From Adineta vaga (Eukaryota > Animalia > Rotifera): a DNA stretch of 64,000 nt. Below are positions 9,197-12,142 of the stretch, one piece after another; within the stretch, counting starts at the first letter, position 1, and each line of letters begins with the position of its first letter. Under the pieces are notes generated by a model. It was not told the origin of the DNA, made no database searches, and saw only the letters and a program-made list of their open reading frames with translations. Location of the stretch: contig CP075493.1 in NCBI GenBank assembly GCA_021613535.1, positions 5,022,001 to 5,086,000 of the forward strand, given 5' to 3'. The position numbers and the translations under genes were made by a program.

Positions 9197-10610
9197 TTAT
9201 TCAATAAGACCATGATTAGCAAGTGAACGCGTTAGAAATGATGTCGTCGCGCCAAGTTTGAATCGTTTACTACTCAATGTTTGAACAGGTGCAACTAAAA
9301 CAAAGTAAAAAAATATGAAAATAGGTAAGTATTTTGAACATAAAAATACTATCGTACCATTTCGTTTTGCTTCTTGTTCATCGTATGAAAAAAGTCCAGT
9401 TGGTCTTCGTATTTCACGATTCACATTTAATACTTGTACTTGTCGTCGTTCGATTGGTTGTTCATCTTCCTCTTGCTCATCTTCTTCGTCTTCTCGTGTT
9501 CGTTTTAATGGACTAATCATAACCGTTCGTCGCGATGTCATCGTAGTATTATTATCATCAACAAGAGAAACTTGTCGTTTCATATTTGTACGTAAATCAA
9601 TTTGACTATCGACTGTAGTTGATAAATCAGGTTCCACTTTTTTTCTCATTATTGCAAATGGATTTACAAGTTTATTGGCGAGATTTGTTACTTTTTTACC
9701 GATGAATGATGTTTGTCGTTGAAATAATGACGTAGAAGAATCCAATCGTTTTAAGCGATCAGTATTCACAACTTTCTTTTGAATCGAGATTGTATCTATG
9801 TTGAAAAGAATACAAAAAATTGATTGATTATAAAACAATCATCGTGATAAGGATACCAGAAAGAGATTTGATAGTGCGCATCCCAGACATAGGTGTCGAT
9901 GGTGGTTTTTTCAATACACCTTGATATTCAAGTGGCGTTGATGAAACTGATGATGATAACGTAGATCGAACGTTACCATTGTTATCAACAGTAAGAATTT
10001 TTTCCTTTGATTCCATTAAATGACCAAAATTACGTTGACGTATATCATTCGTTGGTTCAGCAAATGGATAGGCAACTGAAGCTGGACCTAAAGGAAACTT
10101 TATTGCTTAATTATATCAATGAACATCACTTACGATCATTAAATGAGATTCGTGATAATAATGCTGGTGATAGATTACATGTTGATCTTGATAAAGCATT
10201 TGGATTTAATGGTGAAGCTTGTTCATCATCAAGCCAAGATTCAATAACACGATTAGCAACTATAAAATACAAAGAATGAAAGGAAAATGATTGATTTCTA
10301 ATTATAATCATTTGATTTACCAGCTGAACGTCGTTGCAATGCTGGTTGTTGATTAATCTATTGCAAAAAAAGTTCATTATTGAATAAAATATAAATGAAT
10401 TACTTGAGTACTTACAAGACGAGCTTGTTTCATCAAGCGAATACGATCAGCTTGATTAGTAATACCAAGTTTATTTAATTCATTTTCATTAACTGCTAAT
10501 AATTCATCAATGCTTGAAAAACGATCAGCTAAAGCCATACCATATTTTAGCACGGTACTATTGTTAACTGTAAGGTTCGAATCACGTACGAATTTGAGCC
10601 AAAACGACAT
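9197..10610 (-). CDS. N-terminal SAM-domain protein, C19orf47-like
   Basis: MSFWLKFV...YGMALAD...NENELNKLGI...DRIRLMKQAR is SAM-like; EYQGVLKK resembles the C19orf47 YAGVLK motif; the rest is low complexity. Confidence 0.65.
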
Positions 10611-10828: not shown

Positions 10829-11151
10829 AGTCTACAAAAGAAAAACATGTAAACGACACATGGTCTTCTATGAACTGCATGATCCTTCGTCATGGCTTAC
10901 ATCTATTATTTCTATAGAAAGAATCGCACAAATGTTTCTTCTATCAATCAACAATGTTTATACAAAGTCATCTTATTGTATGATATATATATATTCTTTT
11001 ATCATAGAAATAACGTCAGGTATGTTTAATGATTCATTAAAATTTGTTATCTTTATGATACGAAAAAATACTGTGGGACAAGGCATTGTATATATAAAAG
11101 AAACAGCATTCTTCGTTGAGTTGTATCCGTATTTTGTTTTTGCTGCTATCA

Positions 11152-11801
11152 ATGAGTGCATCATATCCTGCTCCACCTTCATATGAAGAAATTGACGGTA
11201 CTTCGACAAGCAAAATTTCGAGTGCAAATTGGTACGTAAGAATATCTTTGGCATAGAAAAAAAATCGAATATTTCTAACTTTGTTCTAGGCAGGCATGGT
11301 ATAGAAAGTTAATATCAGTAGAATTTAAGCAAGATGAAGCGACTGATTATGCGAAATTATTTTCGGCAAATGAGGTGGAAGTTAACATGATTCCTGAACT
11401 TAATGATGGTATTCTTAAATCAATAGGAATCGAAAAAGCTGGACAGTAAATATCAATGTAAATGAGTTGAAAGAGATGATTAATTTTTTGTTGTAGTCGA
11501 ATTCGAATTTTACGTTTAAAATACAAAACATCAACATCTACTTCTTCATCATCACCACGTGCATCAACGGTTGCGACAGCCCCTGTAAATGTAAGAAAGT
11601 TGATTTTTATTTTTGTATTTGATCGATTAAATGAAATATTTCAAGATTCCACGATGTGCTTGGCATCCTCAAGTGGCAGCGATTGAAAAATGTCGTAAAT
11701 GTAATCGAATGGTATGCTTATCTTGTCGACGAGAAAAATCAGGTGATGGGGGTACACGTTATTATTGTGACAATTGTTTCAATGATTGTATAATTCTCTA
11801 A
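11152..11801 (+). CDS. 161-aa PPxY-SAM-B-box-like zinc finger-CaaX protein, 4 exons (not in ORF track)
   Basis: Exons 11152-11231, 11290-11445, 11497-11590 and 11646-11801 join in frame with GT-AG introns; contains PPSY, a SAM domain, CAWHP-CRKC-CLSC-CDNC and ends CIIL*. Confidence 0.88.
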
Positions 11802-12142
11802 ACTATATGCATACTTATTTTTCGATATTTACTACTGTTCATAAAGATTTCGTCATTTTTCTTTTTTTTTGCGAGGCAATACTACTATAATTACTCACTG
11901 AAATGATTTTCTAATTATAATGCACGTTTTCAACCGAAGCCGACAGGGCTCGATCGCAATATGTTCTCTGTTGTTAAGGTAGAGATGTAATATCACGAAA
12001 ATCTTTTGTCATATAACTATATTCATCGAAAGAATCGTATTTAATAAATATCTTGTTTTCTTCTTTTTATTCTGTTCGTTAACATCGACATAACGAAAAA
12101 AAAACAACGAATTTTTGTATCACAAACGTTGTCGTTTATCAT

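Follow-up and report, generated by a model that had tools for sequence, protein, structure and literature searches.

A conserved, uncharacterised gene from the bdelloid rotifer Adineta vaga whose four exons encode a PY motif, a SAM domain, a B-box-like finger and a predicted CaaX box

RNF11 is a small, N-myristoylated and palmitoylated protein that carries a PPxY motif together with a RING-H2 finger and acts as a partner of Itch, Nedd4, and Smurf2, while the membrane-embedded proteins LITAF/SIMPLE and NDFIP1/2 serve as PY adaptors and activators of Nedd4-family ligases. FBXL2, an F-box protein that ends in CVIL, is geranylgeranylated. The B-box binds two zinc ions in a cross-brace arrangement through the ligands C, C/H, C, C, C, C, H, and H (PMC4506424). 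The protein described here, from the bdelloid rotifer Adineta vaga, brings together a PY motif, a SAM domain, a B-box-like finger, and a CaaX box, a combination that is without an earlier report in the literature searched, and literature searches on this PY-SAM-finger-CaaX architecture returned nothing relevant. The Pfam scan of its database record, UJR14653.1, gave SAM models and a weak zf-B_box only, with no NDFIP, LITAF, or RING-H2 domain, and the protein is not a member of the NDFIP, LITAF, or RNF11 families. Judged by its sequence and its relatives, the four-exon gene is real, conserved, and uncharacterised. Our best reading, which we hold with moderate confidence, is that it encodes a geranylgeranylated membrane protein that would recruit WW proteins, most likely Nedd4-type ligases, while its SAM domain and finger would hold partners or bind the protein to itself.

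The window, that is, the whole stretch of 64,000 nucleotides that was analysed, corresponds to positions 5,022,001-5,086,000 on contig 1 of the Adineta vaga assembly (100.8 Mb, six contigs) and consists of AT-rich eukaryotic DNA with short GT-AG introns. The gene lies on the plus strand, and its first exon (11152-11231), which encodes M1-N26 plus the first 2 nt of W27, starts with the first in-frame ATG after a stop, the same place at which the orthologues begin. Intron 1 (11232-11289; 58 nt, gt..ag, phase 2), which A. ricciae and Rotaria share in both position and phase, is followed by exon 2 (11290-11445), which covers Q28-G78 with SAM helices 1-4 and aligns end to end with exon 2 of A. ricciae and Rotaria at 65-71% identity. 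Intron 2 (11446-11496; 51 nt, gt..ag, phase 2) splits the H79 codon and is kept in the orthologues, as is intron 3 (11591-11645; 55 nt, gt..ag, phase 0); between them, exon 3 (11497-11590) encodes R80-N110, comprising SAM helix 5 and a Ser/Thr/Pro-rich linker. The finger and the CaaX box fall in exon 4 (11646-11801), which encodes I111-L161 plus the TAA stop. A TATA-like element (tatataaaa, 11091-11099, plus strand) located 53-61 nt upstream of the ATG and an AATAAA candidate polyadenylation signal (12043-12048, plus strand) about 240 nt after the stop were read from the sequence, and their functions are putative. Exon-by-exon translation yielded a spliced product of 161 residues that matched the peptide given in the original prediction and was identical, letter for letter, to UJR14653.1, "hypothetical protein I4U23_001646 [Adineta vaga]" (161 aa). 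The proposed four-exon structure was therefore reproduced; the description of the gene as unannotated has to be dropped, as GenBank already holds it under that record, with no function assigned. Full-length analyses were performed with the database record, which equals the spliced product, and genome and protein searches were conducted with the exons taken singly.

The PY motif is encoded at 11173-11193 on the plus strand as PPSYEEI, with the core P8-Y11 (PPSY) extended to I14. The pattern [LP]PxY[EDN]x[IV] was found in all 17 N-termini of the family, in the forms PPSY, PPAY, and, once, LPSY. The residue before x-Y was always Pro and the one preceding it was Pro in 16 of the 17 sequences and Leu in the remaining one; Y+1 was acidic or Asn, and Y+3 was I or V, in every case. 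The original prediction had treated loss of PPxY among homologues as grounds for rejecting it, and [LP]PxY was instead kept in 17/17. Around the motif, the N-terminal tail (the next dozen residues) varied more between species than the SAM block, and its pLDDT was below 50 in a shallow-alignment model, a value with little bearing on disorder because the SAM region was equally low there. The A. vaga genome contains 57 HECT matches. The same conservation would also be seen if the protein were a target rather than a recruiter, with the PY motif acting as a degron through which a Nedd4-type ligase sets the level of a membrane-bound SAM/finger scaffold. The lysines K76, K89, and K125 are conserved, and many PY proteins are adaptor and substrate at once, so that degron and adaptor are non-exclusive and inseparable by sequence alone; a degron in place of an adaptor nevertheless appears to us a rather unlikely account, if the strongest of the competing ones. 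Slightly less probable still is that the N-terminal motif serves a non-ligase WW protein (Yorkie/YAP, Kibra, WWOX), YxxPhi sorting, or phosphotyrosine (YEEI-type) recognition, in which case the protein would be a membrane tether or trafficking tag. The invariable I/V at Y+3 and the acidic residue or Asn at Y+1 suit a YxxPhi signal or a Src-type SH2 ligand as well as they suit an extended PY motif, Y-x-x-I/V also fits an AP-complex sorting signal, and PY motifs bind non-ligase WW proteins too. However, YxxPhi and SH2 ligands need no Pro-Pro, yet both residues ahead of x-Y are conserved in this family, and the extended pattern PPxYxxPhi is that of the Nedd4 WW ligand, as in ENaC subunits, which argues for the reading of the motif as a Nedd4-type WW ligand.

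The SAM domain announced by the original prediction is present. UJR14653.1 scored above the Pfam gathering cut-offs for both SAM_1 (PF00536; 28.2 versus 23) and SAM_2 (PF07647; 25.3 versus 20.5), and exon 2 alone fell below the SAM cut-off because helix 5 sits in exon 3. The SAM part had a pLDDT below 50 in the first full-length AF2 model; the AF2 model of residues 24-95, based on a 17-row alignment, reached 81.3 and displayed five helices. Nearly all entries in the Foldseek list for this model were SAM domains, including Sla1 SHD2, ANKS3, Caskin2, BICC1, Shank, and Eph, with TM values of 0.6-0.72 and an rmsd of about 2 A over 62 residues. These matches had weak E-values, a common outcome with a domain of only 70 residues. 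Across genera, the segment M60-L86 was nearly invariant and the block around the exon 2/3 junction, G78-L86, was invariant, and this near-invariant helix-4/helix-5 block points to a constrained binding face. The combination of an acidic mid-region with an invariant basic start of helix 5 (H79, R80, R82) is compatible with polymerisation but does not prove it, and the word "polymerising" in the original prediction could not be upheld, the SAM fold being the one feature that speaks for it.

The B-box-like finger extends from C114 to C154 (11655-11777, plus strand) and is predicted to bind two zinc ions through eight ligands, C H C C C C C C, all of them invariant, in the pattern C114-x2-H117-x8-C126-x2-C129-x4-C134-x2-C137-x13-C151-x2-C154. 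The first six ligands follow the B-box order, and the final pair is a CxxC placed after a 13-residue loop. With Pfam zf-B_box (PF00643), the finger obtained 15.7-18.3 bits, below the cut-off of 24.1, and the gene was absent among the 28 PF00643 matches listed in the A. vaga genome. In the full-length AF2 model, the finger had a pLDDT of 72-79; its best fold match, a weak one, was the tandem B-box of the plant protein COL2 (Z 3.7, rmsd 1.7 A over 39 residues), and further cross-brace fingers ranked next at Z of about 3. These modelled features are compatible with a B-box-like fold without being decisive. A search of PDB sequences with the finger profile gave nothing significant. Since the Pfam scan of UJR14653.1 detected no RING and the model contained no long coiled-coil-type helix beyond the SAM domain, we place the protein outside the TRIM/RBCC family, of which it is not a member.

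The exon 4 HMMER search against 1.84 billion representative proteins retrieved two true kin only, from A. ricciae and A. steineri, and after these came B-box-like fingers at E-values of 3e-6 to 3e-4, with no animal TRIM-type B-box at E <= 0.001 in the same search. The sources of the non-rotifer fingers were a Planctomycetota MAG, a bacterial contig with dnaA, dnaN, and htrA, and a phage-like string of small genes. The family profile gave 24-41 bits per domain against bacterial and phage-type fingers, compared with at most 13 bits for the canonical B-boxes of the rotifer's own genome (the 12 best A. vaga loci), although the bacterial matches are best picks from billions and the domain is short and cysteine-rich. 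The higher scores against bacterial and phage-type fingers than against the rotifer's own B-boxes agree with the resemblance to prokaryotic B-box-like fingers that had been proposed from the ligand pattern. Searches for finger-pattern loci in bacterial and archaeal genomes and in viral contigs confirmed none, and the patterns were so narrow that this outcome is uninformative. The top profile match outside rotifers (40.8 bits) was a 60-residue protein encoded in the phage-like string of small genes, which lies on a metagenome contig (P0006, L012:1466-1648). It ends in CVII and was considered as a non-rotifer CaaX relative, a candidacy that we rejected on finding it in a tight row of small same-strand genes of phage- or prokaryote-like appearance.

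The CaaX box, CIIL (C158-L161; 11787-11798, plus strand), is of the geranylgeranyltransferase-I type. All 12 complete C-termini of the family ended in CIIL, CVIL, or CTIL with the cysteine exactly at -4, and the box agrees with the GGTase-I substrate rule in each of them (Cys at -4, aliphatic a2, Leu at X). The loss of CaaX among homologues that the original prediction had named as contrary evidence was thus not encountered, as CaaL stood in 12/12 C-termini. The A. vaga genome has at least three prenyltransferase beta-subunit loci. The CaaX cysteine follows the last zinc ligand after 3-4 residues across the family (3 in the A. vaga protein), and model confidence falls toward the C-terminus, reaching 56 at the last residue. 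In known CaaX substrates, the box is usually preceded by a longer flexible stretch, and the short linker between finger and CaaX box could hinder enzyme access. No second membrane signal, whether a polybasic stretch or a nearby cysteine, was found in the family of the target. It is conceivable, if improbable and less so only than an outright gene-model error, that the C-terminal cysteine is left unprenylated and serves as an alternative or spare zinc ligand or as a redox cysteine in a soluble protein, given its distance of three residues from the last CxxC in a tail modelled with moderate confidence. Against this, it is the ninth cysteine or histidine position, beyond eight invariant zinc ligands that already fill two zinc sites, and it is absent from the homologous bacterial fingers; moreover, the protein always terminates three residues past it, and in these endings a2 is aliphatic and X is Leu. 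Prenylation of this cysteine is further favoured by a sister family of fingers, in which a CCaaX end with L or S at X follows a linker of variable length.

This sister family emerged from a profile search of the A. vaga genome, in which a second finger was located on contig 5 at approximately 10776335-10776541 (L007:1474-1680, minus strand) within an intronless ORF of 69 codons ending in CCNLL. Searches of the genome with exon 2, exon 4, and the profile recovered the gene itself and this one weak finger match on contig 5, and no ohnologue. The sister family, a bdelloid one, comprises at least 13 sequences. The relatives of the A. vaga ORF are proteins about 70 residues long that come from Rotaria, A. 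steineri, and metagenomes, each with a short variable head, the finger, the variable-length linker, and CCaaX, and the Rotaria gene is likewise intronless. Their ends included CCIIL, CCVIL, CCVVL, CCVLL, CCTIL, CCTIS, and CCIIS, with X being L or S. The sister box resembles a genuine prenylation signal with a palmitoylation site beside it, because C-a-a-X holds its place at the very terminus, with X alternating between L and S, and because a neighbouring cysteine has been gained. The fingers of the sister family and the target are homologous (hhalign 97%, E 1e-10), and since the finger-CaaX arrangement is common to both families, it looks like a reusable module, with the target being that module preceded by a PY-SAM part. 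The family of approximately 70-residue finger-CCaaX proteins appears to be undescribed.

Full-length relatives of the target, 156-175 aa in length, were identified in A. ricciae, A. steineri, Rotaria sp. Silwood1, R. sordida, and R. magnacalcarata, and Rotaria sp. Silwood2 has a truncated gene model of 133 aa; the gene models are independent in seven bdelloid species. In A. ricciae and Rotaria sp. Silwood1, all four exons can be aligned with their A. vaga counterparts over the full length, and the codons and phases of the introns are identical. The gene order APEH (-), SAM neighbour (-), target (+), RPL28e (-), and VKOR (+) is shared by A. vaga and A. ricciae and recurs at the Rotaria locus, except that APEH was absent among the genes called there. 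For exons 2 and 4, pN (non-synonymous differences, 0.15-0.27) was well below pS (synonymous differences, 0.34-0.69) in all three species pairs. Soil and water metagenome fragments subjected to prokaryotic gene calling run on across intron 1 and terminate at "...AGQ*", which corresponds to read-through of intron 2 and is the same in A. vaga. The ORF is more than chance because A. ricciae and Rotaria preserve its reading frame, its motifs, its gene neighbourhood, and the sites and phases of its introns, and pN is below pS. A spurious or unexpressed chain of ORFs is accordingly a most improbable explanation, contradicted by gene models in seven bdelloid species with conserved introns, open frames, pN below pS, and conserved gene order.

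All relatives retrieved came from bdelloid rotifers (Adineta and Rotaria) or from the soil and water metagenome fragments, and on this sequence evidence the family has been found so far only in bdelloids, within a range defined by an exhaustive search with exon 4 alone and by word searches covering proteins of 0.55-1.75 times the query length. The exhaustive, word, Pfam, and PDB-sequence searches linked the family to no characterised protein, and the ESM Atlas feature search produced no usable match. Several A. steineri sequences depart from the common form. In a divergent paralogue (P0002, L010:4001-4866), represented by the same protein on six contigs, the SAM exon survives at its end, together with helix 5, the finger, and CTIL; a His-Pro repeat region stands in place of the front of that exon, and the PY exon was not found at the locus. 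Either the copy is decaying or its gene model is wrong. Two other proteins, P0013 and P0015, contain a 14-residue internal duplication of the finger start ('IPR[YC]SRH[SP]NVA..'), which may reflect a genuine tandem duplication or an error of annotation.

The genes that flank the target were also inspected. A head-to-head neighbour occupies 9197-10610 of the window on the minus strand, with its first exon at 10416-10610 and its ATG 540 bp from that of the target; its product starts with a SAM domain (SAM_1 E 6e-4) and contains no other Pfam domain. The pairing of the two genes is kept in A. ricciae and Rotaria. From its sequence and position, the neighbour could be a SAM-SAM partner of the target or could simply share a bidirectional promoter with it. 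A recent duplication of the target as its origin was ruled out, the similarity being negligible. On the other side, from 12141 onward on the minus strand, lies a convergent gene with a Gln/His-rich tail at its end, which by position is the homologue of RPL28e at the A. ricciae and Rotaria loci; its stop codon and that of the target are about 340 bp apart.

Taken as a membrane-bound recruiter of WW proteins, the target would function as follows. GGTase-I would geranylgeranylate C158 of the small cytosolic protein, the usual CaaX pathway would trim and methylate the product, and the prenylated protein would then sit on the cytosolic face of a membrane. Its extended PY motif, PPxYxxI/V, would offer a docking site for WW domains, with Nedd4-family HECT ligases as the likeliest partners, while the SAM domain, with its near-invariant helix-4/helix-5 face, and the two-zinc finger would make contacts with the protein itself, a partner, or cargo. 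For prenylation, WW binding, membrane location, and any oligomerisation, we infer these roles from motifs and domains. The original prediction of a prenylated, polymerising membrane adaptor for HECT ubiquitin ligases encoded by an unannotated gene therefore fared unevenly: the architecture stands and both short motifs are real and conserved, the mechanism put forward is plausible on the strength of the motifs, "unannotated" is incorrect, and "polymerising" lacks support beyond the SAM fold. Concerning the origin of the gene, we offer a tentative scenario that we regard as doubtful, in which a bacterial or phage finger was acquired by horizontal transfer in a bdelloid ancestor, a prenyl anchor replaced a membrane segment of the kind apparent in two bacterial relatives to give an intronless mini-protein of about 70 residues, and a copy of this finger-CaaX unit was fused to a PY-SAM part, yielding a lineage-specific, lipid-anchored ubiquitin-ligase adaptor.

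If the recruiter reading is true, bdelloids have built a membrane-tethered Nedd4-type adaptor from parts never seen together. With 161 residues and four separable features, each feature can be tested by simple mutants, and the gene provides a case for asking how lineage-specific, perhaps foreign, domains join the membrane targeting and ubiquitin signalling of eukaryotes. Should the reading prove wrong, a conserved, uncharacterised, and bdelloid-restricted gene family would still remain.

Among known systems, the prokaryotic B-box-like fingers of membrane proteins, as presented in PMC4506424, which cites Burroughs et al., are the closest sequence matches outside rotifers, with the same C-x2-H...C-x2-C-x4-C-x2-C...C-x2-C ligands and about 40% identity over 45 residues. 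Two of the bacterial finger proteins have an apparent hydrophobic membrane segment, as judged by eye, so that their fingers appear to be membrane-adjacent as well; unlike the target, the bacterial proteins carry repeated fingers and lack SAM, PY motif, and CaaX. The animal TRIM-type B-box (PF00643) is alike in the spacing of the first six ligands and in its cross-brace fold, but it ends in His/His, whereas the target has CxxC after a 13-residue loop and stays below the Pfam cut-off. FBXL2 is likewise a ubiquitin-system adaptor tethered to membranes via CaaL, and its CVIL is the ending of the A. ricciae orthologue, although it is a subunit of an SCF ligase with leucine-rich repeats and its domains are unrelated to those of the target. 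LITAF and NDFIP are like the target in that a disordered N-terminal tail bears a PPSY-type motif and the C-terminal part is bound to the membrane, and LITAF additionally has a zinc-binding C-terminal domain and about the same length. Their anchors differ, being a hydrophobic helix in the zinc ribbon of LITAF and three transmembrane helices in NDFIP, and neither protein has SAM or CaaX. RNF11 resembles the target in its similar size, its lipid anchor, its PY motif near the N-terminus, and its two-zinc cross-brace finger near the C-terminus; it differs in its N-terminal acylation, its RING-H2 finger, and the lack of SAM, and no sequence relationship between the two was detected. By analogy, the A. 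vaga protein would follow the same logic as these membrane-tethered PY adaptors, with parts unrelated to theirs.
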